A stretch of DNA of 64,000 nt from Phaeosaccion multiseriatum (Eukaryota > Protista > Ochrophyta, other classes), in assembly GCA_965112735.1 (NCBI GenBank), contig OZ218950.1, positions 5,208,001 to 5,272,000 on the forward strand, written 5' to 3'. Positions 2,374-43,200 of this stretch are shown one piece after another. The position numbers and the translations under genes were made by a program. Position 1 is the first letter of the stretch. Each line of letters begins with the position of its first letter. The notes beneath the pieces were generated by a model that was given only the letters and a program-made list of their open reading frames with translations, made no database searches and was not told where the DNA came from.

Positions 2374-4199
<1,826 letters not shown>

Positions 4200-4325: not shown

Positions 4326-4577
4326 TCAGTCCATTTCGTCAAGGTCGAGCACTTCCTCCTCATCGTCGCTGCTGTCATAACTGTCTCTTTCTACCTCCTC
4401 CTCCTCCTCTTCCTCTCCATCCCCCCCCTCATCCTCGAATATTGAGCTCCCTTCCTCGTCCATCTCCAGCCGCTTTTGTCGCTCCCTCTCCGCCTGCTTT
4501 TTGCGCAACGCAGCAATGAGCTCATCCTTGTCCATGCCCCCATAGCCGCTCTCCCCTCCCCCCCCCAGCTCCTCCCC

Positions 4578-4613
<36 letters not shown>

Positions 4614-6657: not shown

Positions 6658-7107
6658 GTTTTTCGCTTTTCACCCTTCAGGGGAAAAAAAAAAATTTAGG
6701 CTCCCCCCCCCCCCCCGAGTGTGTGACCCTATGGAAGGGTTTTGTTTACGATAGATCTAGGCAGTAGAAGGACATCTCTGAGAGATTTGTTACATGTGGT
6801 TTTGAGGTCTTTCTCCTTCTTCCTCCAAACATCTGTTCTGCTTGGTTTTGTTTGGGGTGAGAGGTGCTACCCCATTTCAACGTGATGAATCCCGCCTCCC
6901 TCCTTCTCTCCCCTTTACCATCTCGGACAAAGTAGCCTTCTTCAGACATGGTAAGTTGGGGGGGGGGAGGGGAGGGCTGTTTGGCCGCGCGTTTGTCGCC
7001 TTGCATCTTCCCCCCCCATCTCCTCTGATCTCTACTAATGCTACTCGCTCTGCTGCTCACCTATCCCACCTCCCCTCTCATTGCTGCATGAAATTCGCTT
7101 CCAGACT

Positions 7108-9649: not shown

Positions 9650-12600
9650 CAACAACATCGGCGCCGACGAGCGTGCTGACCTGCTCCGGTCGGAAAACGC
9701 CGAGACCACCTACGCACTCATTAGGGCGTACCTTGATCAGGCCAACCATCTCATGGTTGCGGGTGAGTGAGTGCAATGCCGTGCTGGCGAAGAAGAAATT
9801 CAGGCCCGCCCTTGTTTCTGGATCCCGAGCACCAGCTCAAGCATGTGTGTGTGTGTGTGTGTTTACTTCCTCCTTTCCTTGTCTGCATGTATCTCATTGA
9901 TCTTGCTTGCTTCTTGCTTTGCAGGTAAGCCTGAGCTGGCTGTAGAGCCTATACAACACGCGCTACGTCGCGTGCACAGCAGTGCCAAGTGGGGTCAAGA
10001 AGAGCGAGATATGGAGCTGGAAGGGCTCTGTCTACTCTCCTGTCAGCTCGCCGAGAGTGGCGATTTTGACTCCGCCTTGGGAAAGGTGCAAGAGATTCAG
10101 ACAACGTGGAGCCCCGCGGATGCTGCGGGGCTTGGTGGATCTGGCATTTGTGCCTGGCTTCTCACGCGGATAGGCGACGTAGCAGCCAAGGTACTGAGGG
10201 ATCGGGACGGAAACAGCGGCAGCAGCAGCGGTAGCAGCAGTAGCGGCAGCAGCGGCAGCAGCAGCGAGCCTGGTGAAACAGCGTTGGCGGCCTACGGGCG
10301 AGCTCTACTGGCCATCCAGAACATCGTAGGGGAGGACCATCCGCTCTGTGCCGTACCTCTGGAGAGGCGGGCGTCTCTGCTGCTGGGGCTGGGGAGGAGT
10401 GGGGAGGCCCTGGACGAAGTGGAGGTGTGTGCTGGAGAGGAGGGGATTGGGGGGGGGGGCAATCGGAAAGGAAGGAAGCCCCTCACCCCATGCTGGCCCA
10501 AGTGTGTGCTTCCTTCTGTGTGTTGGGTGTCGGTGCTCTTTCTAGCCTGCCATCGCACCCCTCCTTTGACTGCCATCCTGCTCATTCACTGGTCTCTTTT
10601 CTTCTCTGGTTTTTTGTTTGTCTCTGGGCGCCTCTTTTTCATGACACGGTTTTGTTATTCTCTCCTCCCCCCCTGGCCTGAAACGTGTCTATTGGAGCAG
10701 GGCATGCTGTCGATCCTTCGGAAGGCTCACGGAGACGGAAACGCTCACCCCAAAGTCGCCGCCACAGATGCCATGCGAGCGAGGCAAGTGCCTAGGGGGC
10801 TGCTGCGACTGCTCACCTCGCTTTGAGGCATACACAGACTGACTTTTACCCGGCTGACTGACCGAGGTGCTTCTCTGGCTCTCTGACCATAGAAGGACGA
10901 AGTTGGGACTGGACACCGTCTGTCTTGTTGCTTTTTGCTCATCGCCTCTGTTCTACATTCCACGCTCCTCCTCTGACCTCCTCCTCCTCCTTGAACGGGC
11001 GCTTGACTCTCCTCCACAGGGCCATGATCGAGCAGGGTGAAGCAGAACGCGCTCAAGAGATCCTGGAGCAGGCACTGGAGCAGCAAGAGGCGACCTTCGG
11101 CAAAGATCACATCTTGACCGCTCAGGTGGGCGGAGCGTTCGTTGACTTAGACTTCTTCTCCATTCCCCTTACGACCAAGCGATCCAAAAGACCGGCCTGC
11201 TCCTGTTTCATTTTGCTCTTATGGTTTCGCGGGTGCTGTTTGTTCACCCTCTTTCACTCTCCCGTCCGACTCCCCTCATGTGCATGCACAGACGATGCTT
11301 CTATTGGCCATCTGTGGGATGGGGGACAGCAGGTACGATACGCTTTTCTTCATGTTGATGTATGTGGCTTTCCCGCGACAGAGTGAGCTCAACACCGATA
11401 TTTGATTGGGCATGTACGTACACTTCAAGAGCAAAGAGATCATTAAGGAATTATCTGCGTTCTCCCGTCCCCTCTGGCACCGCAGCGAGGATATGAGCGA
11501 TGAAGACAGCAGCGCAGACGACGACGACGACGACGACGACGAGGATGAGGAGCACGCCCTAGGAGGCGGTGCTAGGAGCGGCCGTGAGAGAGACGACTTT
11601 GAGAGAGAGGAGGAGTTGTTGAGGCGGAGTGTGGCCGTCTTTGAGTCATATAGCACCACTCCTGCTACTGAAGAGAGCTCTACCAAGAGCTCTGATAGCA
11701 GCGCTGGGGGAGACTGGCGGGTATGTAGGCAGCAGCTGGGAGAGGCGTGCGGGGCACTTGGCCTACTGCTTGAGAGACGGAGTAGCAAGATGCTCAGGGA
11801 GGTGGAGACGGAGGACGAGCTGGGGATGGACTATGAGGTCAGTGTGGGAAGAAGAAGGAGGAGCCTGTGGCGGTGTGTGTGGCAAAGGCGGGGCGGGAAG
11901 GCGTATCCCCTTCTCGTCTTTTTCGTCCCGGTGACATGCGTCGTAGCTTCTCAAGAGCTCTGCCCCTTTCCCCTCTGTCTCACTCTGTCTTACTCTGTTT
12001 TTACTTTTGCCCGACCTGTCGTAACTCTTGTGTTAGGTTGTAATAGGGGAGGCGGAGGACATGCTCAAGAGGCATATGGACCTCGCCGAGGAGGCAAGCG
12101 AGGAGGAGGGGACGTTGGAGGCCAAGAAGAAACATCTCGAGGCCACCAAACGCTTCATTCACTTCCAGCAGGTGAGCCTGACGTGCGTTCGATTGCAGGG
12201 CAGGGACGAGGGATTGGCGAGCCTGACTTGTTTTCCCACGAGGCGTCATGAGCCCTAGCTAGACCGTCCGCATCTCGTCAGTTGTCTGTTGTCGTCGTTG
12301 CCTCTGTGCGGTGGGCTTTTTCAGCTACCATCTTTTCCGTCCCTCTCTTGCTTGCGGGCGGGCGTATCCCTTGTTCTTCATTCCTTCCTGCCTTCCTTCC
12401 TTCCTTCCTCGCTCTCTAGGCCAATGGCGACGAGTCCAAGGCAGAGTCTCTCATGTGGGATATTCAGCATCTCACGGCGCAGGTGTATGGGCCCAAGAGC
12501 CTGGAGATGTGCATGGATTTCGAGCGGTTGGCACGCTTCCTCAGCTCGCACGGGGCCACAAGGTACAGCGAGGCAGAACCCCTCTTCGCCAAGAGCCTGA

Positions 12601-17371: not shown

Positions 17372-19444
17372 ATGGCCACTCGATGGAACGCGAAGGACAA
17401 CACGGGCGAGAGGATAGTACAGGGACCACATCCCCAACGCGTGAGCCGCTGGGACACCACCCAGCGTATCGCGTACCCTGCCATTGTGGACACTCCAGTA
17501 CTGCCCTCCCAGAGCAGGGGAGCGGAGGAGGAGAGCGGAGGAGGAGATGAAGGGTCGGGACTGGGCCGCCTCCGTGCCACTCGAGAGCTCCGCGATCAGA
17601 CAGGGGGAGCGAAGAGCAGGACTCCAGTTTTTGTCGTGCGGATGACTGGGGATGGGAAGTACTGCATGGTGGCGGGCCAGGATAGGACGGTCCGCCTTTG
17701 GAATCCTCACAGGTGGGTCAGGGACCGGCAGGAGGAGCAGCAGGAGCTCTCCAATGGGAAGTGAGGGGAGCAGTGTGAACTGAGCCTACCTTTTCGGACT
17801 TCAAATCCTCTGGAAAAGGTTGTCTTCCTCACCTCTCTTTGGTCCTGGGTTGTGTGTGCATCTACTTTCCGCAGGAATGACCCGGGATCAGAAGGCGTGG
17901 TTGCGGTGAGGAAGGGAGACACAACCGTGCTACCGCCAGGCTTGTTGGTCAAGAGCTACAGCGGCCCGCATGGGCACGAGATCCGAGACATTGCCATATC
18001 CCCGGACAATGCGAGGTTTGCGTCCGTAGGCGGAGATCGAACGGTGAGTAGGCTTGGACAACATCGAGTTCTTCCCTCACCCTCGCCTACTCTTCTTTCT
18101 CCTTCCCTAGGGCGCTCGCATGTCAAGACTCCTTGCTGCCTATCCTCTGGGTCCACTGCCAACTCCCTCCTTACGAACAGTTCCAGCACCACCGCCCCAC
18201 CAAGCCAAAAGGGGAAACAAAGCTGACCTCGCTGAACGCTCCCCTGTCCCTACTGCGTTACACTGTAGGCTTTCTACTGGGACGTCGCTACGAGCCGGGT
18301 CCTGCGCAGGCTGCAGGGCCACGAAGCCCGCGTGAACTGCTGCGTGCTTAATAAGGACGCCACCGTACTGCTCACGGGCTCTTACGATAAGAAAATCGTG
18401 GCGTGGGACTTACGCAGCAACAGTCACGCCCCCATTCAGGTACGGAATTCAACCAACGCTAAATCTTGACGAGGCGTTTCGTTGCCAGCAGAGATGCCAT
18501 AGACGACTTGACTTGCTAGCCCTTCCGCCGTGTCGTTGCCGGTGCCTCTCGTCCCGCCTTGCCCCACCCACCCCCCCAGACTCTCGAGGGCTGCCGGGAT
18601 AGCGTCACCTCCCTCGCAATGTCGTCGGCCGGGCACGAGATTGTGTGCGGCAGTGTGGACGGGTTTGTTCGCACCTTCGACCTTAGCTCCGGCCAGTGCC
18701 ACCAGGACAATGTACATCAACCTGTTACTTGCATTCGGTGCGTTACTGTGCGTGTTGTCTAATAAGTCACTGATTAATTTCCTCCAAAGAATGGCTACTT
18801 GCTAGTATACACAGTAAGTTGGTGCTTGTTTGGTATTGACTCTCCTTCCCCGCGCTCCGCTGCTGCATGTCTGTTGCTCCCCTCCTCTCCCTTCCGGTCT
18901 GCCTCAGCATGAGCAATGACGGAAACTGCGTACTAGCGAGCTGTATGGGCAGCGCGGCCAAGGCAGGCGGCGTGAAGAGGAAGGCAGGCTTCCTCACTTT
19001 GCTGGAGAAGGACTCCGGCTTAGAGCTTGGGCGCTACCGTGGGCACACTCACGTGGACTACACTATTGGGTGCTGCTTCAGCAACTCAGATGCCCATGTT
19101 CTTAGCGTGAGTGAAGCGACGCGACGTTCAGTGTGGCATGAGTGGTGCAGGTGGACATACATGATACCATCACTGCCCCATAACATGGACCAAACGAAAA
19201 GACAAAAAAGTCGTCACCTTTGCTGACTGAAACCCCTTCCCTTTTCCCTTTCCTTTTTGTCGCTCGCGCTCCTTTTTCGCAGGGCTCCGAAGACGGGCGG
19301 GTGGTGATCTGGGATCTGGTGGAGGAGCAAGTTGTGGGTACGCTCGAGCACCACAGGAAGGCGACCTGCTCCTTGGCCTTCCACCCCGAGAAGGATGTGG
19401 TGGTGTCAGGCTCCCATGACGGCAGCGCTGTCGTGTGGACGTGA
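17372..19444 (+). CDS. WDR83: WD40-repeat protein WDR83/MORG1 homolog, multi-exon
   Basis: GDGKYCMVAGQDRTVRLWNPH, YSGPHGHEIRDIAISPDNARFASVGGDR, LQGHEARVNC, EIVCGSVDGFVRTFDL, GRYRGHTHVDYTIGCCFSNSDAHVLSGSEDGRVVIWDLVE follow the MORG1 motif order. Confidence 0.88.
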
Positions 19445-25276: not shown

Positions 25277-27263
25277 TCAGGGGCCGACCTTGCCATGTTG
25301 GGGTGCCTGCAGCCTTCCGATCTGCGCCCGCATTATCTGAGACTGAGCTTTAAGTTCGGCGAGTTCGGCTTCCAACGTTTCCAATTCATCCTGCCCGTTG
25401 CTCTTCTGACTGGGCGTCTGCGTGGCCTGCGAGAGTGGCCGCCCCCGTAATCCCTTCGAAAAAGTGTGCACTGGGCCCTGCTGCAAGAGGTTGCTCCCCG
25501 CCCCCGCATCTCCCTTCTTCCCTCCTCGCGAGTCCAAGGACTTTGCAAACAGGTCGCTGAAGCCCTTCCTACGCAACTCTTCGACCAGCCCCAAGGCCCG
25601 CTCGTGCTGATTCGTCAAGGTGCAAACTTGTATTGCGGCCATGTAGGTCTCTTTATTGGCCTCAACCTTGGCCTTGCGCATGCTTTCCATCGTCGAAAAC
25701 ACCTGTGTGTGCCCCCCAACGAACGAGGATGGGGAGCGTCAGTCAAGAGTGCCCAATGCCGGCCCTCCCATGCGAGCAGCAACAGCAGAGCGGACAGAGC
25801 ACACTTGCCGCAACTAACCTGCTGATGCGCCCCTGCGTCGGCGCACATTTTCACCACCTTATTATACGCGTGGACGTCCGGAGGGCAAGAGTCCCACTTC
25901 ATCTGTGACAGCACCTGGAGCGCGAGGGAGTACTTGCCAGCCAGAGAACACGCGTCCAGCACAGCGTTGTAGTCCCTGTCGGAGTGGAACAGCAAACAGC
26001 AGCGGACATAAGTTATTATGACAGAGTGTCATGCCGGTACAGCGACGCCTTGTGTTGGCTCGTATAGCGACGCCTGCCGTCGCATCATTCTCTTCTCACT
26101 CACCGTCTCTCAGGCCGCAAGTCGGTGCCGGACATCATCTGAAGCACCTCGAGCGCCTTCTCACACTCCCCCTGTTGCCCGTACGCCAGCATAATCGCGC
26201 GGTAGGTGCCTCCGTCGGGCTCGAAGCCGGCCCTGCGCATCTCCTCCAGCACTTGCACCACGAGCTCCACCTCCCCGCCCGCAGCGCACGTGTGCATGAC
26301 AACATTGTAGCACGCAAGGTCTGGGGCTTTCTTCATGGCTCGCAGAAGGTCCACAGCGGGTGCGTGTTGCTCTGCGTCTCGACAAGCCCGCAGAGCGTCC
26401 AGGTAGACCGCCAGTTCCGGCTCAAACCCATTCTCCTCCATGGTCTTGAGAAGAACCAACGCCTCGCTGTAGCTGCCCAATGCAGCAAGGCCCTTCATCG
26501 CGCTGGCGAAGCCCGAGTAGGTATTTTCCGTGGGCCGGCTGGTCTGCGCGACTGCACGCATATTGGCCACCTCGCGCGCCTCCTTCAGCGCCCGTACTTC
26601 TTCGCAGAGCTCGATGACAGAGAGGTAGGCCTCGTCAGAGGGCCGCAAGTGTGTGGAGTCCGTCATATGCCGCAGAAGTTTCAAAGCATTCTGCCATCTG
26701 CCCATTTGACAAAACGCCTCCAGGGCAGCTTCGTACACCGTCAGCGGCAGGTCGAGCCCACAACTTGTGGCCAGCAGAAAACAATTTTCTACGCGTTCCC
26801 ATCCCTGTCCACGTTCACCGAGGATCCGAAAAGACTCGATTAGCCCATCGTTCTCGATAGAAGAAGTCCCTGAAGGTACCGCCTCGGAAGATGGTAATGA
26901 TAACGATAGTCGTGGCAATGCCGAAGAAGGGAGAGAGGAGGGAGGGGGGTGGTGGAAGGAGGAGGGTGGGGAGGAGGAGGAGGAGGAGGAGGAGGAGAAG
27001 GAGGAGGAAGGAGGGGGAGAGAAGGGGGAGAAGGAGGGGATGGACGAGGAGGGCGAGAAGGAGGAGAAGGACGAGGAGGAGGACCAGGAGGACCAGGAGG
27101 AGGAGGAGGAGGAGGAGGAGGAGGAGGAGGAGGAGGAGGAGGAGGAGGAGGAGGACGAGCAAGAGGAAACCTCCGCCCCACCCCCCCGTCTCAGCAGGCT
27201 GCCAGCAGCAGAAGCATCCGCTGCAGAGTATCCTGCGCGCATGATCTGATACGAGCGCCGCAT
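25277..27263 (-). CDS. Pentatricopeptide repeat (PPR) protein with N-terminal poly-Ser/Pro low-complexity tract
   Basis: Tandem ~35-aa PPR motifs: VYEAALEAFCQMGRWQNALKLLRHM, CYNVVMHTCAAGGEVELVVQVLEEMRRAGFEPD, YNAVLDACSLAGKYSLALQVLSQMKWDSCPPDVHAYNKVV. Confidence 0.9.
26924..27168 (+). repeat. Purine-rich (GAG)n tract, encoding poly-Ser/Pro on the minus strand of the PPR gene
   Basis: Long GAG runs visible directly. Confidence 0.9.
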
Positions 27264-27797
27264 GGTCGAGGAAGCAAGAGGTCAGTGCGTTAGTAAGTAA
27301 ATTATAAAAAAAGAACACAGGCTCGCGAGTTGGTTATCCAGCCCCCCCCGGGCGCCTTATTTTCCCGTTGGCTTGGATTGAGCCTAACGTCCATTGGAAG
27401 GTAAGGATGGGAGCAGGGTGCAGCAGCGGGTAGCAGCGGCACCAAGCAGCATCGAAATCAACAGTAGGATACACCACACGCCTTATCTAGCGGCGGCGGC
27501 ACAGTCTGTCGACCTGGAGCGTATAAATCAAGCCTTGATCTTCACCCGTTACACGGATCGGATCCAGGTGAGCGCGGTCGGATTGGAGACGACAAAGTTC
27601 GGTAGCAGGCAGCAAAGCAGCACAGCGGGCGGGTGGTTGAGGAACTGTGCTACTGCTGTCGACGCCTTTTACGTGAGTCTGTCTCAATGGTTTGATCTAA
27701 TTTTTTTTTTTATCCTTACTCCCTCCGTGTCCACAAAAGGCAAGCGGGATTTTGACCAAGCCTCAGTGGTCTGGCATCTGCGGCAGCAGCGGCAGGC

Positions 27798-28236
27798 ATG
27801 CCGCGGTGGCCGTGGCTCACCATGCTGCTCTATGCGGTAGCATGGTGGGCCCTGCTGTCGGCCCCGGTAGTCTTGGCACAGGTGTGCGAAGACTTTACCG
27901 GTGAGGAGAATGGCGGCTACTGGGCGCAAGTGGCCAAGTGTGGCAGCTGCAATGAGGTCGACGGGTGCGGCTACTGCTTGTCGACGCTTCAGTGCCTCAA
28001 TGGGGATGCGCAAGGCCCTTTGGATGGGTCTCCTTGCCCCAACTGGGTGGTGTCAGGGGGGGCCTGCCCCGTTGTGCCAGTGTGCAGCGCTTATCCAGAC
28101 TGCTCAACGTGCGCCCAGGACGAGGATTGCGCCTGGTGCGCGTCGGAGGCACAGTGCATGACAATCTCTGAGATCTTCAGCACGGACTGCCGCGGCACTG
28201 TCTTCGATCTGCCTTGCCCTTCTTCGTACATCGGAG
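27798..28236 (+). other. Exon 1 of the giant gene: signal peptide plus two PSI-like (plexin/attractin-type) Cys-rich modules
   Basis: MPRWPWLTMLLYAVAWWALLSAPVVLA|QVC signal-like N-terminus; CGSCNEVDGCGYCLSTLQC and CSTCAQDEDCAWCASEAQC fit CxxCx5Cx[WY]Cx5C. Confidence 0.8.
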
Positions 28237-31200
28237 GTGAGTCCGGCCTCCCGAGAGAAAGCTTATCTCAAGTCGTCTGAGGGGAGGGGGAGCTTCAGAA
28301 TTATCATCATGGCATGCAAGACTGTGTCTATTCTGCTTCAGTATCCCTATCCCAGTTTGACGCATAGCATGCGCGCAAAATTTCACCGCCTGCTGCCGCT
28401 CACCGTGGCACTTGCATGCACAGCACAGCACAGCACAGCTCAAACCCTTCGTCCTCACTCCATTTCCTCTCGCCCCATCCCCCGTGCATTTCCTTTCGCT
28501 TGCAGAGAACAAGGTGATTGGCAACCTGGTCGTCGAAGCGGATCCTCTCTTTGGAGGTGGTTCGCTGACGGCGGGAGGCCCCACGGGCACCGGTGCGTCC
28601 TTTGAATTGACTCTCAACGAGTCCGCGTTCCGCGTTGCCTCCGGAGGCGATGTCGACATGACAGCAGGGGCGTCTAACGCTGCCAATGTCAAAGGAGGCG
28701 GAGTGCACATTGGTGGCGGAGACGGCACCAATGCCCTCGGAGGGGGCGGAGGAGACATCACCTTTGTCGGTGGAGGCGGGTTCGGCCTCGAGAGCTTCGG
28801 TGGAGACATTGGCGACGGCGGCTCCGTCGAGCTGCAAGGTGGGACCAGTGTGGAGGGAAAAGGCGGCAGCGTCTCTCTCAGCGGAGGGAGCAGCAGCACG
28901 GGCACTGGTGGCGCAGTTTTGATTCAAAGCGGCGCGAGCAACACCGTGGCCAGCGGCTCCATCCTCATCCAGTCCGCCAGAAGTCTGGGCGAGGCTGCCA
29001 GCGGGGATGTGTCAGTGGGCTCAGGCACCACCGCCTTTGGATCCACCGGCTCACTCATGCTCTCCACCGGCAGCAGCACCAGTGGCACGGCGGGCCAGAT
29101 CATCATCTCTGCGGGGATGGGGAACTCTGGCAGTGGCAGCAGTGTTGAAATTTCTGCGGGAGGCACAAGCGCCGACGGAGCTGCGGGCGGAGACGCTCGT
29201 ATCGTGTCGGGCTTTAGCCAGACGGCAGGCAGCGGAGGCCTCAACTTCTTGACGGCCAATGCAGGCTCCAGCGGAGGCAGTGGCGACATTTTGTTGCGCA
29301 CGGGGACGTCGAGCTCGGGAGACTCGGGGAGCATTTCTCTGGTCACCAACGCCGCCACTGCTGGTCACGCTGGAGACATCAACTTACTCGTCGGGCCTGG
29401 CGAGAGCGGCAAGGGCGGCCAAGTCTCCTTGGAGGCTGGAGAGTCGTCTGCGCCGTCGGCAGCAGGAGGTGATGTCTTCATCTCCGCCGGAGCAGGCACT
29501 GCGGCAACCGTCAACGAGGGCGGTAAGGGGGGCCATGTCAAGATTTCTGGCGGCGATGCCATGGGTCTGGGCTCGTCGGACCAAGCCGGAGACGTCAATC
29601 TCATTGGCGGCTATGCCCAGGCAGGGCGTGGGGGAGACATTCTGATCTCCTCTGGCGTTGGCCGTGCAACTTCTAGTGGGCAGGTCCTCGTCACGACGGC
29701 CAATGCCGGCAGCGACGGAGGGAGCGGCGGCCTGTTCTTGGCTACCGGTACCTCGTCGGCTGGGAGCACGGGCGCGCTCCTGCTCAACACTGGAGACGCG
29801 AGTCAAGGGGCGGGTGGAAACATCGAGCTCAGAGTCGGAGAGGGCGATTCGGGGGTTGGTGGGTGGGTGGTCATCAAAGGCGGTACCAGTTCGGATCAGT
29901 CAGGCGGAAGCATTTTACTGGCAAGCGGGGAGGGTACCGCAGGATCTAGCGGTGACGTCATCATTCAGACCACGGACGCAGGCACCAGCGGGGTCTCTGG
30001 GTCCATCCTTCTGTCCACCGGACAAGCTACCAACGGCAGCGCAGGAGCCATTCAGTTCCAGACAGGCTCAAGCTTGGATGGAGATGCTGGAGACATCATC
30101 TTCAGCATCGGAGGCGCGGAGTCGGTGGGCGACGGAGGTGACATATCCTTCATGGCCGGAAACACAAGTGCTGTAGAAGGCGTGGGGGGAGGAGTGGTGC
30201 TCATGGGCGGAGGGGGAGAGAACCCTGACGGGGGAGAGGGAGGCTCAATCGCGCTCACCGGCGGATCAGCAGCAGGCACCGGCGAAGACCCCGGTGCCGG
30301 AGGTGGGGACGTTGGTATCACTGGAGGCAGTGCCGCTGGGGGAGTGGGCGGTAGCATCAGCATTGCTGGTGGAGCATCCACCTCCAACCAAGGTGGAGCT
30401 ATCGAGATCACGAGCGGTAGCAGTGCTCTCTCCACCAGCGGTGACGTGAGCATTGCCACTGCCGACGCCCAAAACGAAGCTGCGAGTGGAGCCCTCAGTC
30501 TCCGCACAGGCACATCGAGCTACGGAGAAAGCGGCTCGGTGCTCATCAGTTCAGGAAATGCCATGAACGGAGCTGGAGGCTCTGTACAAGTTTCTGTCGG
30601 AACGAGCAGCAGAGGCGACGGAGGAGACCTCTACCTGGCAGCAGGAGGAACCTCGGCCGTCGGAGCACGCGGAGGAACCACATACGTCACTGCTGGCGTC
30701 GGTTTCAGCGATGATGAAGGCGACGGTGGCGATGGTGGCCATGTTGTAATCCAGGCCGGAGCTTCCATGGGCACCGCTGCTGTGGACATTGGCGGTACGG
30801 TAGAGATACTCGGTGGTGACTCGATCGCCGGCAGGAGCGGCGGATTGAGCTTGCAATCTGGATCCAGCGAGCAAGGCTCGAGTGGGCCTATCGCAATGTC
30901 CACCTCCGACTCTGGCACAGACGGCGTATCGGGCAGCATTGCAGTCGTGACCGGGAGGTCGGCGGCAGGCACATCAGGCCCCATTTCTCTCCAATCGGGC
31001 CCCGCCACGGCAGGAGCCGGAGGGGCCATCTCTCTCGCAGTCGGCGACGGGGACTACGGTGACGGAGGAGCAGTCTTCATCTCTGCAGGACGAACGACCT
31101 CAGTCGCGAGTCAGGGAGGAGCAGTGGTCATCGCCGGAGGAGAGGGCTCGAGCCCTCATGCGCATGACGGGGGCGACGGCGGCCAAGTTCGCATCGTTGG

Positions 31201-34200
31201 TGGAGCGGCCATGGGCGGCTCTAGCGGGGATGCAGGAGGAGGCGTTGCTCTGGAAGGAGGGCGCTCCTACGCTGGACACGGCGGGGACCTTTCTCTCTCG
31301 TCCGGCACCAGCGATCTGAGCTCCAGCGGATCCGTGCTACTCAACACGGGCAACGCAGGACAGCAGGGAGCCAGCGGAGCGATTTCCCTCTCGACGGGCA
31401 CCTCCAGTGCGGGCTCCACTGGGCACATCCGAGTCGGTACCGGTGCCGCGCAGGGGGGCAGTGGAGGCGACATTGTCATCGCCGTTGGCCAGGGAGACTC
31501 GGGCAGCGGGGGCAACGTGGCCATCTCGGCAGGTGACACCGATGATGTCAAGTCAGGGGGCATGGTGACGCTGGAGAGTGGGTACAGCTCTCGCGCTTCG
31601 AGCGGGTCTGTCCTCCTGAGGACACCCAACGCAGGCATCGATGGTGCAAGTGGGGGCATTCTCCTGAGCACTGGCACCTCCAGTGCGGGCCAAAGCGGTG
31701 CTGTGCAGCTTCTCTCCGGCGCCGCCACCAACGGCGCAGGAGGCGACATCATGATGCGTGTGGGCACCGGCGACGAGGGTGATGGAGGCCATGTGCTCAT
31801 CTCTGCCGGTGAGACGGAAGCCGCCGAGGCCGAGGGAGGCAGCGTGGTCATTGCCGCCGGGGAGGGAAGCAGTCAAGACAGGTACCACGGAGGACAAGGC
31901 GGCAAGGTGCAGATATTTGGTGGTGCCGCTCAAGGAGGCTCGAGCTCGGACTACGGCGGGAACGTTGAGGTGGCGGCAGGCTACTCCCGAAAGGGGCGTG
32001 GCGGCTCCTTCGACTTTGTCACCGGATACGGCGAGGCCACCTCCAGCGGTGTTATCGACGTGCACACGGCCAACGCCGGCAAGGCAGGGGCCAGTGGAGG
32101 TATCTCCATCTACTCGGGGACTGCAAGCATGGGCAACTCCGGAACCATCAGCATGCAAACGGGCAGCGCAGACAGGGGGCGAGGAGGCTCCTTCGAACTG
32201 TTCCTGGGCACAGGCGACTCGGGTATGGGCGGAGAGATTGCCATGAGTGCGGGAGATACGCTGGCAGCTGACGGCACGGGAGGCAAGGTGTCTATTCAGA
32301 CAGGGCACTCCTTCCAAGGCAGCAGTGGGGGCCTCTCTCTCGAGACTGCCAACTCGGGCGTGACGGGCACCAGCGGGGGCATTGCCCTCTCCACCGGCAT
32401 TGCCAACGGGCCGCTTCCCTCGGGGGGAGTGTCGCTCATCACCGGCGCGTCAAACAAAGGCCCGGGGGGTGACATTCAGCTTCTCGTGGGCAGTGGAGCC
32501 GCAGAAGACGGAGGAGATATTGTGTTGGTGGCTGGAGAGACGACAGCAGCAGGCCAGCGGGGTGGAGATGTCATGATTGCCGGAGGGGCCGGGACTAATG
32601 CGGCCAATGGAGGGTCGGGAGGAGGGGGCGATGGAGGAAACGTGTACATTGATGGAGGAGACGCAGGGGGGCTCGATCCCACCAAAGATGTGGGGGGCAG
32701 CGTCGAGATTACAGCGGGATACGCAGCTGCCGGGGTGGGCGGGTCTCTCATTGGCCGCTCAGGACACAGCGAGGCCTCGTCTAGCGGCCAGATCATGCTG
32801 CTCACAGCGGACGCGGGCAGAGCGGGAGTGAGCGGGGAAATGGTGCTGTCGACCGGTTCCGCAACGCTGGGCAACTCCGGCTTCGTCTTCATTGGAACGG
32901 GAGAGGCCGTCTCCGGACGAGGGGGCTCCATCGACGTAGTGGTGGGCAGCGGCACCGTCGGCGACGGAGGTGACGTTGTGGTGTCAGCAGGAGAGACCTC
33001 CGCAGCAGGGGGACGAGGAGGAGACTTGCGTCTCTCCGCTGGCACCGGCAGCAACAGCCTCGTGTCCGGCGGTGGCAGAGGCGGGAGTGTCTCCATTGAG
33101 GCTGGCGAGGGGCAGGGCGGTGCCCCGAGCGACGTTGGTGGAGACGTCACCGTCCGAGCGGGACAGGCCAGTGCTGGAGACGGTGGATCAGTGCACATTC
33201 TTTCCGGCGCAAGCAGCACAGCGGGCGGCAGTGGGTCCATCAACTTGCTCACGGCCAACGCTGGCCAGACGATTGGCGACAGTGGCTCATTGTCTCTGTC
33301 GTCAGGCTTCTCTCCCGCCGGATCATCGGGCTCTCTCTCCCTCGCCACAGGTGTGGCCATGTCTGGAGCGGCCGGAGGCGTCATGATTAGCGTGGGCACT
33401 GGAAACGTCGGCAGCGGAGGTAATATCTCCCTCGTAGCTGGAGACACTGTGTCCCAGCGGGGCCAGACAGGCGGCTCCATCGTTGTGCAAACTGGAGAGA
33501 GCCTGATGGGAACGAGTGGTGGCCTCGCGCTCCGTACCGCCAATGCAGGGCTCTCGGGCCAAAGCGGTGCCATCGAGCTGTCGTCAGGCACCTCATCGGT
33601 CGGGGCGTCAGGGGGCGTCACCGTCTCTACAGGGGCTGGCCCCTCAGGCGGGTCCATTTCTGCTCTGGTGGGTGAGTCCACCGAAGGAGCAGGAGGAGGA
33701 ATCATCCTGCAAGCTGGACTCTCCCGGCGTGGAGGCGGCGGTGACGTCACCATCGCAGCAGGTGCCGCAGCTGCCACTGATGCTGACCAGCAGCACACCC
33801 TGGGGGGTGGAGGAAGCGTGCTCGTGGAAGGAGGTGCCTCTTCGCTCACAGACGGTGGATCGGTAGCGGTCAAGCCCGGTTTGGGGGCTCTCTCCAACGG
33901 CGAGGTGGTGATCCAAGCTGCAGATGGCGCCGACAGGGTGACTGTCAACGACCTCAATGTAACGCTTCAAGCAGGGGAGGGCGCAGGAGCCGTCAGAATC
34001 GAAACCGCCGACGGCACCGCATTCTTGGAGGTGGATTCGAGCGGTGTGCACTCCAACGCTGGCATGGATGGGGACATCTCCATGCGTGTCCCTGCTGGTG
34101 GCAGCGGCATGATTGGCCTCAGTGTGGGCGATGAGGATGTTTACGACTTTCGAGTGCAAGAGATGACGGGCTCGCAGCCTATGGTGGTCGCAACCGCCCC

Positions 34201-37200
34201 GTTGCAAGTGACCACACTGCAGTACTCTTCGGATGAGCGCATCAAGACCAACATCAATGATCTCGACGTCGATGACCTTCTCCAGCGCTTCCAGGCCGTG
34301 CAGATGAAGGAGTATGGATACACGGAAGAGTGGCGGCGCGTGCGTGAGCTCGAGGGCGACCCTCGTGTGCGAGGAGTCATCGCTCAGCAGCTGGCGACTG
34401 TCTTCCCCGAGCATGTGGACATCATCCCTGAGTACACACTCGAAGACAAGGACTTTACCATTGCGGGCTTCCACCAGGTGGACAAGACCTCTCTCGTTGT
34501 TGACTTGGTGGGTGCGCTGCAGTCGATGCATCGGCGCTTCTCTGTGGGAGCTAGCACGCCCTTCCGAAGCGGCGTCATCAGCATCGGCACGGACGACGCT
34601 GGCAGCTATTTCAACGCCGACGCCGACGGTACAAGCGGTGCGCTCAACCTCACGACTGGTACCTCCACAATAGGTACTACAGGAGCCATCATGATCACGA
34701 CTGGAGACTCTACACGGGGCGCCTCCGGCAACATTTCCCTGCAAGTTGGGTCTGGCTTGTCCGGCGGCGGCGGAATGATGGAGCTGAGCAGCGACGTCTT
34801 GCTAGCGGGAGGGAACTCCACCCATTTGACGGGCAGAGGAGGCTCATTGCTGCTGCAAGGTGGCGTGGACTTGTACAGCGAAACCGCCGGGGGAGGCAAT
34901 ATTACCCTCATGGCAGGTCTCTCTCACTCCGGCATTGGTGGTTCAGTGTTGATCACAAGTGGAGAAGGGCCCAGGAACAGCTCCGGTCCCATCACCATTC
35001 GATCTGCAAACGGCGGTCAGGAGGGCACCAGCGGCTCCCTCGTGTTCCAATCTGGCACATCCGGCTCCGGCAACTCAGGACGAGTCATGATTGGTTCGGG
35101 TGCCGCCGAGGGCGGACGAGGCGGTGGGCTGGAGCTCTTGGTTGGCAGCGGAACCAGCGGAATGGGAGGCCACTTGCTTGCTCGAGCTGGTCACGCTGAG
35201 ATTATGACTGGAGGAGAAGTGGTACTTTCCAGCGGAACGAGCGAGTTCACAAGCAGCGGACCCGTTCGAATCTCCACAGCAAACGCCGGTCTGTTCGGCG
35301 CAAGCGGCCTACTCTCTCTCTCCACTGGCACCTCAAGTATGGGCAACACTGGAGCCATCTCCCTGCGAACCTCCGGAGCCGCCTTTGGGACTGCGGGCGC
35401 GATATCTCTCACAGTGGGGACGGGCGCTAGCGGTGCGGGGGCAGGCGTATCACTGCAGTCCGGCACTACCAGTGCTGAAGAGAAGGCCGGAGGGAGCGTG
35501 AGCGTGAGAGCTGGTGATGGCACGAGTGCCGTGGGTGGCATGGGAGGCAACGTGCTCCTCTTCGCGGGCTCAGGGGCTTCCGCTACCGGAGGCTCCGTCC
35601 GAATCACAAGCGGCGTTGGTGAGCTGTCGTCCAGTGGGGTTGTGCGCATTCTCTCAGCCAATGCAGGCTATGACGGCGCGAGCGGCTTTCTCAGCTTCAG
35701 TTCGGGAACGTCTAGCAGCGGCAACAGCGGAGACATTCTCATCGGTAGCGGCTCTGCGACAGGTGGACGTGGCGGCTTGCTGAGTTTGACGGTCGGGACT
35801 GGAAACAGCGGAGCCGGAGGACTAGTGAGGACCTGGGCAGGGGACAGCAGTGCGGCCACTGGAGGAGCGATAGCGATATCAACTGGGTCGGGAATTGCAT
35901 CAAGCAGCGGTACCGTGTCCATTCGCACGGCCAATGCTGGATACTACGGCGCAAGCGGTCTGTTGTCATTCAGCTCCGGTACGTCGAGCTCAGGCAACAC
36001 AGGCGCTATTTTGATCGGCACAGGGACAGCTACGGGGGGCCGTGGTGGCTTGATCAGCATCACAGTCGGGCTAGCGCAGTGTGGTAGTGGTGGTAGACTG
36101 AGTCTTGCGGCAGGCCAAAGCAGGTATCTGACTGGAGGAACAGTTTGGATGCAGTCCGGCGCTGGGACCGCCACCTCCAGCGGCGCTGTCAATATACGGA
36201 CCGCCAACGCTGGACGAGATGGGACGAGTGGACTTCTTTCCTTCAGCTCCGGCACGTCAAGCTCTGGAAACAGTGGATCGGTGATGATTGGCTCAGGACC
36301 GGCGACGGGAGGCCGTGGGGGGATGCTATCACTCACTGTGGGAACCGGAACGTGTGGCACTGGCGGTGACGTGTACGTCCACGCCGGGGATGCCAAGACA
36401 GCGAATGCCTACACGGGCGGATCGATCGCTCTTGGCTCAGGTAGAGGATTCATTACGAGCAGCGGCTCAATCACAATAACCTCACACAACGCCGGCACTC
36501 AAGGCGTTAGCGGCCTGCTGGTATTTAGCTCGGGGACAACTAGCTCAGGTAATAGCGGCGCGGTGCTCATCGGCAGCGGCGCCAGCACGGGAGGACGCGG
36601 CGGCATGGTGAGCCTGACGGCGGGCAGCGGCACCAGCGGCGCTGGCGGTCTGGTGCAGATGTATGCTGGTGTGAGCACGGTACTGACGGGCGGTGTGGTG
36701 AGCATCGGGGGCGGCGAGGGTCGCGCGTCCACGAGCGGGTCTGTGACTGTGCGCTCTCTGAACGCTGGCACGGCTGGCACGAGTGGTCGTTTGGTGTTCA
36801 GCTCCGGCACGGCGAACTCCGGCAACAGCGGCGCCGTGCTCATCGGCAGCGGCGCCAGCACGGGAGGGCGTGGCGGCATGGTGAGCCTGACGGCGGGCAG
36901 CGGCACCAGCGGCGCTGGCGGTCTGGTGCAGATGTATGCTGGTGTGAGCACGGTACTGACGGGCGGTGTGGTGAGCATCGGGGGCGGCGAGGGTCGCGCG
37001 TCCACAAGCGGGTCTGTGACTGTGCGCTCTCTGAACGCTGGCACGGCTGGCACGAGTGGTCGTCTGATATTCAGCTCCGGCACGGCCAACTCCGGCAACA
37101 GCGGCGCCGTGCTCATCGGCAGTGGCGCCAGCACGGGAGGACGTGGCGGCATGGTGAGCCTGACGGCGGGCAGCGGCACCAGCGGCGCTGGCGGTCTGGT

Positions 37201-40200
37201 GCAGATGTATGCTGGCGTGAGCACGGTACTGACGGGCGGTGTGGTGAGCATCGGGGGCGGCGAGGGCCGCGCGTCCACGAGCGGGTCTGTGACTGTGCGC
37301 TCTCTGAACGCTGGCACGGCCGGCACGAGTGGTCGTCTGGTGTTCAGCTCCGGCACGGCCAACTCCGGCAACAGCGGCGCCGTGCTCATCGGCAGCGGCG
37401 CCAGCACGGGAGGACGTGGCGGCATGGTGAGCCTGACGGCGGGCAGCGGCACCAGCGGCGCTGGCGGTCTGGTGCAGATGTATGCTGGTGTGAGCACGGT
37501 ACTGACGGGCGGTGTGGTGAGCATCGGGGGCGGTGAGGGCCGCGCGTCCACGAGCGGGTCCGTGACTGTGCGCTCTCTGAACGCTGGCACGGCTGGCACG
37601 AGTGGTCGTCTGGTGTTCAGCTCCGGCACGGCCAACTCCGGCAACAGCGGCGCCGTGCTCATCGGCAGCGGCGCCAGCACGGGAGGACGTGGCGGCATGG
37701 TGAGCCTGACGGCGGGCAGCGGCACCAGCGGCGCTGGCGGTCTGGTGCAGATGTATGCTGGTGTGAGCACGGTACTGACGGGCGGTGTGGTGAGCATCGG
37801 GGGCGGCGAGGGCCGCGCGTCCACGAGCGGGTCTGTGACTGTGCGCTCTCTGAACGCTGGCACGGCTGGCACGAGTGGTCGTCTGGTATTCAGCTCCGGC
37901 ACGGCCAACTCCGGCAACAGCGGCGCCGTGCTCATCGGAAGTGGCGCCAGCACGGGAGGACGTGGCGGCATGGTGAGCCTGACGGCGGGCAGCGGCACCA
38001 GCGGCGCTGGCGGTCTGGTGCAGATGTATGCTGGCGTGAGCACGGTACTGACGGGCGGTGTGGTGAGCATCGGGGGCGGCGAGGGCCGCGCGTCCACGAG
38101 CGGGTCTGTGACTGTGCGCTCTCTGAACGCTGGTGCGGCTGGCTCGAGTGGTCGTCTGGTGTTCAGCTCCGGCACGGCCAACTCCGGCAACAGCGGCGCC
38201 GTGCTCATCGGCAGCGGCGCCAGCACGGGAGGACGTGGCGGCATGGTGAGCCTGACGGCGGGCAGCGGCACCAGCGGCGCTGGCGGTCTGGTGCAGATGT
38301 ATGCTGGCGTGAGCACGGTACTGACGGGCGGTGTGGTGAGCATCGGGGGCGGCGAGGGTCGCGCGTCCACGAGCGGGTCTGTGACTGTGCGCTCTCTGAA
38401 CGCTGGCACGGCTGGCACGAGTGGTCGTCTGGTGTTCAGCTCCGGCACGGCCAACTCCGGCAACAGCGGCGCCGTGCTCATCGGCAGCGGCGCCAGCACG
38501 GGAGGACGTGGCGGCATGGTGAGCCTGACGGCGGGCAGCGGCACCAGCGGCGCTGGCGGTCTGGTGCAGATGTATGCTGGTGTGAGCACGGTACTGACGG
38601 GCGGTGTGGTGAGCATCGGGGGCGGTGAGGGCCGCGCGTCCACGAGCGGGTCTGTGACTGTGCGCTCTCTGAACGCTGGCACGGCTGGCACGAGTGGTCG
38701 TCTGGTATTCAGCTCCGGCACGGCCAACTCCGGCAACAGCGGCGCCGTGCTCATCGGAAGTGGCGCCAGCACGGGAGGACGTGGCGGCATGGTGAGCCTG
38801 ACGGCGGGCAGCGGCACCAGCGGCGCTGGCGGTCTGGTGCAGATGTATGCTGGCGTGAGCACGGTACTGACGGGCGGTGTGGTGAGCATCGGGGGCGGCG
38901 AGGGCCGCGCGTCCACGAGCGGGTCTGTGACTGTGCGCTCTCTGAACGCTGGTGCGGCTGGCTCGAGTGGTCGTCTGGTGTTCAGCTCCGGCACGGCCAA
39001 CTCCGGCAACAGCGGCGCCGTGCTCATCGGCAGCGGCGCCAGCACGGGAGGACGTGGCGGCATGGTGAGCCTGACGGCGGGCAGCGGCACCAGCGGCGCT
39101 GGTGGTCTGGTGCAGATGTATGCTGGTGTGAGCACGGTACTGACGGGCGGTGTGGTGAGCATCGGGGGCGGCGAGGGTCGCGCGTCCACGAGCGGGTCTG
39201 TGACTGTGCGCTCTCTGAACGCTGGCACGGCTGGTACGAGTGGTCGTCTGGTGTTCAGCTCCGGCACGGCCAACTCTGGCAACAGCGGCGCCGTGCTCAT
39301 CGGCAGCGGCGCCAGCACTGGAGGGCGTGGCGGCATGCTGAGCCTGACGGCGGGCAGCGGCACCAGCGGCGCTGGTGGTCTGGTGCAGATGTATGCTGGT
39401 GTGAGCACGGTACTGACGGGCGGTGTGGTGAGCATCGGGGGCGGCGAGGGCCGCGCGTCCACGAGCGGGGCTGTGACTGTGCGCTCTCTGAACGCTGGCA
39501 CGAAGGGTACGAGTGGTCGTCTGGTGTTCAGCTCCGGCACGGCCAACTCCGGCAACAGCGGCGCCGTGCTCATCGGCAGCGGCGCCAGCACGGGAGGACG
39601 TGGCGGCATGGTGAGCCTGACGGCGGGCAGCGGCACCAGCGGCGCTGGCGGTCTGGTGCAGATGTATGCTGGCGTGAGCACGGTACTGACGGGCGGTGTG
39701 GTGAGCATCGGAGGCGGCGAGGGCCGCGCCTCCACGAGCGGGTCTGTGACTGTACGGTCTCTGAACGCTGGCACGGCCGGCACGAGTGGTCGTTTGGTGT
39801 TCAGCTCCGGCACGGCCAACTCCGGCAACAGCGGCGCCGTGCTCATCGGCAGCGGCGCCAGCACGGGAGGGCGTGGCGGCATGGTGAGCCTGACGGCGGG
39901 CAGCGGCACCAGCGGCGCTGGCGGTCTGGTGCAGATGTATGCTGGTGTGAGCACGGTACTGACGGGCGGTGTGGTGAGCATCGGGGGCGGCGAGGGCCGC
40001 GCGTCCACGAGCGGGTCTGTGACTGTGCGCTCTCTGAACGCTGGTGCGGCCGGCTCGAGTGGTCGTCTGGTGTTCAGCTCCGGCACGGCCAACTCCGGCA
40101 ACAGCGGCGCCGTGCTCATCGGCAGCGGCGCCAGCACGGGAGGACGTGGCGGCATGGTGAGCCTGACGGCGGGCAGTGGCACCAGCGGCGCTGGCGGTCT

Positions 40201-43200
40201 GGTGCAGATGTATGCTGGTGTGAGCACGGTACTGACGGGCGGTGTGGTGAGTATCGGGGGCGGCGAGGGCCGCGCGTCCACGAGCGGGTCTGTGACTGTG
40301 CGCTCTCTGAACGCTGGCACGGCTGGCACGAGTGGTCGTCTGGTGTTCAGCTCTGGCACGGCCAACTCCGGCAACAGCGGCGCCGTGCTCATCGGCAGCG
40401 GCGCGAGCACGGGAGGACGTGGCGGTATGGTGAGCCTGACGGCGGGCAGCGGCACCAGCGGCGCTGGTGGTCTGGTGCAGATGTATGCTGGTGTGAGCAC
40501 GGTACTGACGGGCGGTGTGGTGAGCATCGGGGGCGGCGAGGGCCGCGCGTCCACGAGCGGATCCTTGACTGTGCGGTCTCTGAACGCTGGCACGGCTGGC
40601 ACGAGTGGCCGTCTGGTGTTCAGCTCCGGCACGGCCAACTCCGGCAACAGCGGCGCCGTGCTCATCGGCAGCGGCGCCAGCACGGGAGGACGCGGCGGCA
40701 TGGTGAGCTTGACGGCGGGCAGCGGCACCAGCGGCGCTGGCGGTCTGGTGCAGATGTATGCTGGTGTGAGCACGGTACTGACGGGCGGTGTGGTGAGCAT
40801 CGGGGGCGGCGAGGGCCGCGCGTCCACGAGCGGGTCTGTGACTGTGCGCTCTCTGAACGCTGGCACGGCTGGCACGAGTGGTCGTCTGGTGTTCAGCTCC
40901 GGCACGGCCAACTCCGGCAACAGCGGCGCCGTGCTCATCGGCAGCGGCGCCAGCACGGGAGGACGTGGCGGCATGGTGAGCCTGACGGCGGGCAGCGGCA
41001 CCAGCGGCGCTGGCGGTCTGGTGCAGATGTATGCTGGTGTGAGCACTGTACTGACGGGCGGTGTGGTGAGCATCGGAGGCGGCGAGGGCCGCGCGTCCAC
41101 GAGCGGGTCTGTGACTGTGCGCTCTCTGAACGCTGGCACGAAGGGCACGAGTGGTCGTCTGGTGTTCAGCTCCGGCACGGCCAACTCCGGCAACAGCGGC
41201 GCCGTGCTCATCGGCAGTGGCGCCAGCACGGGAGGACGTGGCGGCATGGTGAGCCTGACGGCGGGCAGCGGCACCAGCGGCGCTGGCGGTCTGGTGCAGA
41301 TGTATGCTGGTGTGAGCACGGTACTGACGGGCGGTGTGGTGAGCATCGGGGGCGGCGAGGGCCGCGCGTCCACGAGCGGGTCTGTGACTGTGCGCTCTCT
41401 GAACGCTGGCACGGCCGGCACGAGTGGTCGTCTGGTATTCAGCTCCGGCACGGCCAACTCCGGCAACAGCGGCGCCGTGCTCATCGGCAGCGGCGCCAGC
41501 ACGGGAGGACGTGGCGGCATGGTGAGCCTGACGGCGGGCAGCGGCACCAGCGGCGCTGGCGGTCTGGTGCAGATGTATGCTGGCGTGAGCACGGTACTGA
41601 CGGGTGGAGTAGTCAGCATCGGGGGCGGCGAGGGCCGCGCGTCCACGAGCGGGTCTGTGACTGTGCGGTCTCTGAACGCTGGCACGGCCGGCACGAGTGG
41701 TCGTCTGGTGTTCAGCTCCGGCACGGCCAACTCCGGCAACAGCGGCGCCGTGCTCATCGGCAGCGGCGCCAGCACAGGAGGGCGTGGTGGCATGGTGAGC
41801 CTGACGGCGGGCAGCGGCACCAGCGGCGCTGGTGGTCTGGTGCAGATGTATGCTGGTGTGAGCACGGTACTGACGGGCGGTGTGGTGAGCATCGGGGGCG
41901 GCGAGGGCCGCGCGTCCACAAGTGGGTCCGTGACTGTGCGGTCTCTGAACGCTGGCACGGCCGGCACGAGTGGTCGTCTGGTGTTCAGCTCCGGCACGGC
42001 CAACTCCGGTAACAGCGGCGCCGTGCTCATCGGCAGCGGCGCCAGCACGGGAGGACGTGGCGGCATGGTGAGCCTGACGGCGGGCAGCGGCACCAGCGGC
42101 GCTGGCGGTCTGGTGCAGATGTATGCTGGCCTGAGCACGGTACTGACGGGCGGTGTGGTGAGCATCGGGGGCGGCGAGGGCCGCGCGTCCACAAGCGGGT
42201 CTGTGACTGTGCGCTCTCTGAACGCTGGCACGGCTGGCACGAGTGGTCGTCTGGTGTTCAGCTCCGGCACGGCCAACTCCGGCAACAGCGGCGCCGTGCT
42301 CATCGGCAGCGGCGCCAGCACGGGAGGGCGTGGCGGCATGGTGAGCCTGACGGCGGGCAGTGGCACCAGCGGCGCTGGCGGTCTGGTGCAGATGTATGCT
42401 GGTGTGAGCACGGTACTGACGGGCGGTGTGGTGAGCATCGGGGGCGGCGAGGGCCGCACGTCCACGAGCGGGTCTGTGACTGTGCGCTCTCTGAACGCTG
42501 GTGCGGCTGGCACGAGTGGTCGTCTGATATTCAGCTCCGGCACGGCCAACTCCGGCAACAGCGGCGCCGTGCTCATCGGCAGCGGCGCGAGCACGGGAGG
42601 ACGTGGTGGCATGGTGAGCCTGACGGCGGGCAGCGGCACCAGCGGCGCTGGCGGTCTGGTGCAGATGTATGCTGGTGTGAGCACGGTACTGACGGGCGGT
42701 GTGGTGAGCATCGGGGGCGGCGAGGGCCGCGCGTCCACGAGCGGGTCTGTGACTGTGCGCTCTTTGAACGCTGGTGCGGCCGGCTCAAGTGGTCGTCTGG
42801 TGTTCAGCTCCGGCACGGCCAACTCCGGCAACAGCGGCGCCGTGCTCATCGGCAGCGGCGCCAGCACGGGAGGGCGTGGTGGTATGGTGAGCCTGACGGC
42901 GGGCAGCGGCACCAGCGGCGCTGGCGGTCTGGTGCAGATGTATGCTGGTGTGAGCACGGTACTGACGGGCGGTGTGGTGAGCATCGGGGGCGGCGAGGGC
43001 CGCACGTCCACGAGCGGGTCTGTGACTGTGCGCTCTCTGAACGCTGGCACGGCCGGCACGAGTGGTCGTCTGGTGTTCAGCTCTGGCACGGCCAACTCCG
43101 GCAACAGCGGCGCCGTGCTCATCGGCAGCGGCGCCAGCACGGGAGGACGTGGCGGCATGGTGAGCCTGACGGCGGGCAGCGGCACCAGCGGCGCTGGCGG

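Follow-up and report, generated by a model that had tools for sequence, protein, structure and literature searches.

What is a self-cleaving chaperone of the kind carried by phage tail fibres doing inside an immense open reading frame (ORF) of an alga? The question is raised by a stretch of 64,000 nucleotides from the ochrophyte Phaeosaccion multiseriatum (GenBank assembly GCA_965112735.1, contig OZ218950.1, positions 5,208,001 to 5,272,000 of the forward strand; hereinafter the window), in which a first-pass annotation, made from the letters alone, had proposed a Peptidase_S74/ICA domain embedded in a giant secreted protein of β-repeats. We found that this is a genuine ICA domain lying between repeats of one family in a single frame, and that the same layout is present in other stramenopiles. 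In our assessment, the locus is probably a nuclear gene of the host that encodes a giant secreted fibre protein similar to phage tail fibres, which would trimerize and cleave itself at its internal ICA.

The internal ICA domain and its family

The Pfam profile PF13884 (Peptidase_S74) matches 34229-34417 of the window with an E-value of 7.3e-13 (49 bits; gathering cutoff, 22), spanning profile positions 1-57 of 58 and beginning at the very codon (34229-34231) that had been named as that of the putative catalytic serine. The peptide quoted with that proposal was likewise recovered, in frame and in place, when the translation of 34100-34600 was checked. By sequence, the best PDB chain is the ICA of mouse MYRF (7dc3, E 1.5e-5), the second and last match being marginal and unrelated (E 0.021). 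An AlphaFold2 model of 33608-34907, built with an alignment of 51 family sequences as input, has a mean predicted local distance difference test score (pLDDT) of 76, with values of at least 90 across the ICA (model residues ~211-310). When this ICA model is compared to the PDB with Foldseek, 7dc3 is again the best match (E 1.8e-7, template-modelling score (TM) of 0.74 by target, root-mean-square deviation of 2.3 Å, 117 columns), followed by the phage ICAs 3gw6 (endoNF), 3gud (GA-1) and 4uw8 (T5 fibre). The model and its matches thus display the ICA fold, a β 'donut' with a C-terminal helix, as the first-pass annotation had anticipated.

The predicted active site is also intact. The domain opens with S-D-E-R-I-K (34229-34246), i.e., with the S-x4-K spacing of the catalytic dyad, which is constituted by Ser2055 (34229-34231) and Lys2060 (34244-34246) in the numbering of our gene model, in agreement with the earlier estimate of about residue 2055 for the serine. 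In the alignment with 7dc3, Ser2055 falls on the position of MYRF S587 (Ala in the crystal construct) and Lys2060 on K592, and the counterparts of MYRF R590, Y615, Y617, I637 and Q639 are all identical, with the arginine at +3 and the tyrosines at +28 and +30 from the serine, and the isoleucine and glutamine inside a G-V-I-A-Q motif. In MYRF, the S587A and K592A mutations abolish cleavage, the cut falls between P586 and S587, and R590, Y615, Y617, I637 and Q639 line the cutting site and affect processing (PMC8326128). The domain is, then, a bona fide member of the S74/ICA family. A hidden Markov model (HMM) of the family, run over all six frames of the window, detects only this one ICA, at 34205-34549 (160 bits).

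The gene in which it resides has the following features:

27798-27878, plus strand: start codon and signal-peptide-like N-terminus of ~27 residues (sequence and Kyte-Doolittle hydropathy)
27879-28236, plus strand: remainder of exon 1, a Cys-rich PSI (plexin-repeat) region (Pfam PF01437)
28237-28505, plus strand: phase-1 spliceosomal intron, 269 nt long (donor GTGAGT, acceptor TTGCAG)
28506-33985, plus strand: N-terminal shaft of ~1,825 residues (unit HMM tiling 28598-33985)
33986-34228, plus strand: conserved non-repeat neck directly upstream of the predicted cut site (alignments of relatives and family consensus)
34226-34228 and 34229-34231, plus strand: predicted scissile bond between Ser2054 and Ser2055, with Ser2055 as the putative nucleophile and Lys2060 as the putative base
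34229-34549, plus strand: ICA/Peptidase_S74 domain (PF13884, 7dc3, AlphaFold2 and Foldseek, family HMM)
about 34484-34537, plus strand: C-terminal helix of the ICA
34550-36553, plus strand: post-ICA linker and ~9 super-repeat units (hmmsearch)
36554-64000, plus strand: tandem array of 100.5 copies of a 273-bp (91-residue) unit, running off the end of the window (Tandem Repeats Finder)

The neck carries a family motif of the form Y-D-F-R-x-Q ... P-x-Q-V-T and is modelled with strands at residues 168-171, 181-186 and 190-195; the alignments of many relatives begin at query residue ~14-35, well upstream of the serine. These relatives were collected by searching 1.84 billion representatives exhaustively with HMMER, the neck and ICA serving as query; 343 sequences passed E <= 1e-3, of which 34 also passed E <= 1e-30, and nearly all are short fragments (a 433-residue query returned only 4 matches, with repeat words crowding the candidates). 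Those that could be named are from ochrophyte stramenopiles, namely Tribonema minus, Phaeothamnion confervicola and the brown alga Hapterophycus canaliculatus. The best AlphaFold Database cluster matches are entries called 'Peptidase S74 domain-containing protein'; their accession prefixes we take to be those of oomycetes, the organism column being masked, and the family is probably found in that lineage too. One relative with 53% identity (P0014, RYG63291.1, E 5e-40) goes by the title 'MAG: tail fiber domain-containing protein [archaeon]'; this is probably a case of a eukaryotic or viral contig that ended up in an archaeal metagenome-assembled genome (MAG).

In the window, in the Tribonema locus, in the homologous loci L001 (from a eukaryotic assembly) and L002, and in P0010, P0017 and other relatives, the neck and ICA are flanked on both sides by the same Gly/Ser-rich super-repeat of ~91 residues, in one reading frame. 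In Tribonema minus (L058; GCA_017506865.1, JAFCMP010000532.1:649055-670383) the entire 21,329 bp is one frame of 7,109 codons, open at both ends, with a single central ICA bearing an intact Y-S-S-D-Q-R-I-K and with 17 matches to the repeat HMM upstream and 43 downstream of it. As the public annotation of this locus is split into three gene models of 3,224, 237 and 1,292 residues, the true architecture of the family is hidden in the databases. Indeed, searches of a 5.8-billion-protein set in the ranges of 2,200-7,000 and 5,500-17,500 residues yielded no annotated family gene model of 2,200-17,500 residues, and the family is effectively invisible there, with annotations cutting its genes into fragments. 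Accordingly, the claim that the architecture is unfamiliar stands in part: the literature we searched has nothing on a stramenopile internal-ICA family and no characterized protein with this layout, but the locus is not a one-off. Judging from sequence comparison, the internal ICA is a conserved, if fragmentarily annotated, trait of an ochrophyte stramenopile family.

Several of the relatives carry more than one ICA. In L001 the first lies ~1,948 residues past the PSI junction (1,907 residues for its counterpart in the window) and is followed by two others at about +389 and +754 residues, in which the serine is replaced by Ala and Asp, respectively. The ICAs are located at positions 11042, 12209 and 13304 of L001 and at 8345 and 10610 of L002; in these clusters of two or three, about 370-390 residues apart, the first alone retains the serine and the later ones keep the lysine, a pattern that recurs between assemblies. 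The three-ICA cluster is 77-80% identical between related assemblies, the copies being 41-51% identical to each other. Across the family, 123 ICA copies could be scored: 99 have both Ser and Lys, whereas in the other 24 the Ser is replaced by Ala, Asp, Glu, Gly or Val, and many of these 24 also lack the Lys. At the other end of the L002 homologue is a C-terminal non-repeat domain of ~170 residues (17,600-18,195), in which we found no Pfam match, transmembrane segment or terminal ICA. Its language-model neighbours, which we treat only as leads, are a diatom cluster, phage hypothetical proteins and a K1-lyase C-terminal domain, and it may be a fibre-tip or binding domain.

The Ser-less copies bring into play an alternative for the window, namely that its ICA is a permanent in-line trimerization node, uncut in vivo, with the protein persisting as one covalent chain per protomer. 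These 24 copies indicate that the family uses ICAs without proteolysis; the second and third ICAs of P0001 lack the serine, a state conserved across P0001, P0002 and P0003; and a study on MYRF describes cleavage there as amenable to regulation or inhibition (PMC12803276). Against it, the ICA of the window retains the Ser, Lys, Arg, Y-x-Y and G-V-I-A-Q, and both Ser and Lys are kept by the first ICA of the multi-ICA relatives and the sole ICA seen in the Tribonema locus. That the dyad persists here, when it has been lost from other copies, suggests that it is in use; hence, we consider an uncut node unlikely at this locus.

The repeat shaft

An HMM of the ~91-residue array unit tiles all of exon 2 except the neck and ICA. 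One repeat family therefore lies on both sides of the ICA, in line with the proposal of an internal ICA flanked by β-repeats. The N-terminal shaft comprises ~23 diverged super-repeats of ~91 residues, each made up of six sub-repeats of 15/16 residues and rich in Gly, Ser and Thr. Downstream of the ICA, between 34544 and 36553, the hmmsearch scores of the units climb from about 2-12 bits to 77 bits toward the array, which Tandem Repeats Finder describes with a period of 273, 96% matches and no indels, and whose units are 99.2% identical to their consensus at the protein level. The protein body as a whole is 27% Gly, 17% Ser and 10% Thr, with Cys, Pro and Trp nearly absent.

An AlphaFold2 monomer model of four repeat units attains a pLDDT of 67 overall and ~70-80 over most rungs. 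DSSP assigns no secondary structure to it, i.e., there is no intrachain β-sheet. AlphaFold2 usually builds single-chain solenoids readily. Foldseek retrieved no PDB match for this repeat model, and a Foldseek-independent scan of 48,161 chains gave five at Z >= 2, headed by the HylP structures 6wv2 (Z 4.7) and 2c3f (Z 4.3) and including 2wb3 and a phage tailspike. The HylP proteins are textbook triple-stranded β-helix fibres. The repeat model also superposes with TM of 0.82-0.94 on ESM Atlas clusters named S74, one of them from a phage. Each of these structure scores is weak, but as they agree in direction, the predicted shaft chain has the look of a strand out of an intertwined trimer and not of a solenoid complete in itself.

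The principal alternative for the shaft is that each chain is by itself a single-chain β-solenoid with 15/16 residues per turn, and that the ICA only bundles three such rods or acts as a protease. Rungs of 15-16 residues with Gly turns would fit known single-chain solenoids, of which the insect antifreeze and ice-nucleation proteins are examples. However, the model lacks intrachain strands, the PDB matches are exclusively phage fibre and tailspike chains, and the same predicted shape is seen in phage S74 proteins. Moreover, the partners of ICAs characterized so far are all intertwined trimers (PMC8326128; TLP-12, see below). We therefore regard independent solenoids as improbable, somewhat more so than an uncut ICA.

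Gene model and selection on the array

Exon 1 opens at the ATG at 27798 and has 146 codons, 16 of them for Cys. The N-terminus runs from a basic residue through a hydrophobic core to V-L-A before a Gln (the cleavage point was placed by eye), and its Kyte-Doolittle means over 15 residues are 1.6-1.9 across residues 7-30 and negative beyond. It is followed by a PSI domain at residues 96-126 (PF01437, E 7.5e-6, 26.6 bits; cutoff, 23.1), such that both the signal-like N-terminus and the PSI head of the first-pass annotation were recovered. The PSI part is 70% identical to an ORF upstream of the L001 homologue. Within exon 1, a run of seven Gs (28056-28062) is one G shorter in the contig from one of four public DNA runs (X3). 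As the length in the window keeps the frame and fits the conserved PSI sequence of L001, this difference is probably a homopolymer error in the X3 contig.

The intron donor stands directly after 28236 and the acceptor ends at 28505, with a split codon (G/AG) leading into the ICA frame from 28508. This splice junction is supported by L001, where one uninterrupted, intron-less ORF reads straight across it: residues 1-24 of that ORF correspond to the last 24 residues of exon 1 in the window (79% identity), residue 25 is a Glu, equal to the split codon, and residues 26 onward match the window from 28508 onward (52% identity). The ICA frame is free of stops from 28361 to the end of the window (11,880 codons), leaving an N-terminal piece of ~2,027 residues per chain between the signal peptide and the predicted cut, and at least 9,924 residues from Ser2055 onward within the window, consistent with the more than 9,900 claimed at the outset. 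In Pfam scans covering exon 1 and 28361-40999, PSI and S74 were the sole domains detected. The array also matched Arabinose_Iso_C, but at 20-23 bits it fell short of the cutoff of 25 and no individual domain stretch passed; we rejected this match as spurious.

Open-frame length alone is no proof of coding in the array because the minus strand also has long open frames (9,159 and 2,879 codons, 36499-63978). We rejected these minus-strand ORFs, which a repeat without stops produces incidentally, since the variants favour the plus frame by 86:28. Among the 114 distinct variants between array units, 86 are synonymous and 28 nonsynonymous in the ICA frame (75% versus the 29% synonymous expected), and 65 of the 90 variable columns are at codon position 3. 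The codon-locked antisense frame gives a synonymous to nonsynonymous count of 75:39, and the remaining four frames 19:95 or worse. This synonymous excess establishes that the array is under purifying selection as a protein in the ICA frame. At the DNA level, 97 of 100 units are distinct, with exact internal repeats reaching at most 476 bp; hence, the array is resolvable by long reads. Its GC content is 70% compared to ~58% in the flanks, a rise that is confined to the array and follows from the codons for Gly, Ala and Ser.

The neighbouring ORFs code for proteins with cyclin N-terminal (49-972, plus strand), TPR (9771-10826, plus strand) and PPR (26100-27263, minus strand) domains. The surroundings are those of an ordinary eukaryotic nuclear chromosome and not of a viral island.

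Two ORFs from giant-virus MAGs, L003 (1451-4585) and L006 (2328-5687), code for fibre-like proteins of about 1,044-1,119 residues whose ICAs carry the exact motif of the window, S-S-D-E-R-I-K-T-N-I, which indicates that ICA fibres are common to protist hosts and their giant viruses. One might accordingly take the locus for something other than a functional host gene: an integrated giant-virus fibre gene, a pseudogene or a satellite assembly artefact, as could also be suggested by the long minus-strand frames, the break of short-read contigs at the array edge and the elevated GC content. This is very improbable, given the spliceosomal intron, a PSI exon conserved with another species, the ordinary cyclin, TPR and PPR neighbours, the strong synonymous excess in the ICA frame, units distinct enough for long reads, a GC content accounted for by codon usage, and the different layout of the viral ORFs, in which the ICA is at the C-terminal end of ~1,050-1,120 residues; a giant-virus insertion in particular we rejected in view of the intron, a PSI junction that is conserved, and neighbours of host type.

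Proposed assembly and cleavage, and known ICA systems

For the self-cleaving secreted fibre that we favour, we propose the following course of assembly. The signal peptide would direct the chain to the endoplasmic reticulum (ER), and the disulphide-rich PSI head would fold. Three chains would meet at the single internal ICA (residues ~2047-2161), whose C-terminal helix and β 'donut' would trimerize as in MYRF and the endosialidase; in MYRF, this helix is the main driving force of trimerization (PMC8326128). The ICA trimer would then set the register of the Gly/Ser/Thr-rich rungs of 15/16 residues, giving rise to a triple-stranded β-helix shaft. After assembly, Ser2055, activated by Lys2060, would cut the Ser2054-Ser2055 bond, parting the PSI-tipped N-terminal trimer from a much longer C-terminal trimer, in which the ICA cap would be followed by at least 109 units of 91 residues within the window. 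The Ser/Thr-rich surface is probably heavily O-glycosylated, in which case the mature product would be an extracellular glycofibril.

Several points weigh against this proposal. First, most of the fibre is downstream of the ICA, whereas phage ICAs chaperone the parts upstream of them, such that the direction of templating would be without precedent; the phage rule, whereby a C-terminal ICA templates what precedes it, is therefore not the whole story here. Second, since about a fifth of the family ICA copies lack the serine, cleavage is not obligatory for the function of the family, even as the copy in the window keeps every residue tested. Third, the Z-scores of the shaft are low, under the tool's caution line of 8. 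Fourth, short-read contigs end at the start of the array (one of 9,461 bp), leaving its copy number unconfirmed. Finally, searches of public runs brought up only the four mentioned above, from one sample and consisting entirely of DNA contigs; over 27600-33500 these contigs are colinear with the window and retain the intron, say nothing on expression or splicing, and may be the assembly's own source.

As a possible, if doubtful, elaboration, the ICA might serve as an early registration clamp, locking three nascent chains together after ~2,050 residues, with the remaining ~10,000 or more folding from N to C as a triple β-helix in the course of their synthesis. Self-cleavage would then free the PSI-tipped leader, the dead ICAs of the relatives would be permanent register nodes, and such fibres would represent the ancestral context of the MYRF ICA. 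If true, this order would run opposite to that of phage spikes, in which templating is post-translational and proceeds from C to N, and would amount to a new assembly route for megadalton homotrimeric fibres. More generally, the family offers a testable model of how register is established among three chains that each run to tens of thousands of residues, as well as candidate genes for the extracellular fibrils of ecologically important algae. It also gives the MYRF ICA a place among the fibre proteins of eukaryotes and giant viruses, instead of leaving it as a lone acquisition from phages.

ICAs had previously been studied at the C-terminal end of phage fibres and in MYRF, and a 2025 preprint added alveolate glycofibrils with a C-terminal ICA. 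To these may be added a third, conserved use, in which one or several ICAs, some of them Ser-less, are embedded in the phage-fibre-like shaft of a predicted secreted eukaryotic protein, as in the window, Tribonema, Phaeothamnion, a brown alga and probably oomycetes.

Among the known systems, MYRF/MrfA (7dc3; PMC8326128, PMC3742443) is the best match in both sequence and fold, has its ICA in an internal position, and shares with the window the S-x4-K dyad, the Arg, the Y-x-Y and the G-V-I-A-Q. By analogy to it, the N-terminal trimer would be freed and the ICA would remain on the C-terminal piece. However, MYRF is a transcription factor of the ER membrane, in which a DNA-binding domain of the Ndt80 type and a transmembrane helix accompany only a short, partly intertwined stalk. 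The protein of the window instead has a signal-like N-terminus, a PSI head and thousands of residues of fibre repeats on each side of the ICA; we found neither an Ndt80/PhoG or other DNA-binding domain upstream nor a transmembrane segment downstream within the window, the remainder of which is uniform repeat.

The ICAs of phage endosialidases, tail spikes and tail fibres (endoNF, 3gw6; GA-1, 3gud; T5 pb1, 4uw8) belong to the same family and follow a β-helical shaft, as is proposed for the window, and the putative chaperone-then-cleave logic is shared as well. They are nevertheless C-terminal and discarded, as opposed to the ICA of the window, which is followed by the bulk of the fibre, with at least 9,800 open codons downstream in the window. 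The giant-virus ORFs, despite the identical S-S-D-E-R-I-K-T-N-I, resemble the phage proteins in having a C-terminal ICA. For the shaft, three of the five solved chains resembling the repeat model, including the top two, are HylP1, HylP2 and HylP3 (2c3f, 6wv2, 2wb3), a weak match (Z 4.3-4.7, ~10-13% identity) to enzymes of ~340 residues that have no ICA.

The nearest functional precedent is TLP-12, a giant eukaryotic protein of short Gly/Ser repeats with an ICA. This alveolate protein of ~20,000 residues forms, according to cryo-electron microscopy, a trimer in which β-strands interweave beneath a thick coat of O-glycans; its ICA is credited with templating the trimer, and candidates have been reported from Amoebophrya (bioRxiv 10.1101/2025.09.30.679562). 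The two differ in that TLP-12 combines 12-residue GSxxSx7 repeats with a C-terminal ICA in alveolates, whereas the stramenopile protein combines 15/16-residue sub-repeats within 91-residue units with an internal ICA and a PSI head; GSxxSx7 dodecapeptides with a C-terminal ICA were not found in the window, and homology of the repeats is not shown. Thus, giant eukaryotic trimeric β-fibrils with an ICA were already known from TLP-12, and what is new in the family described here is the internal position of one or more ICAs between like repeats.

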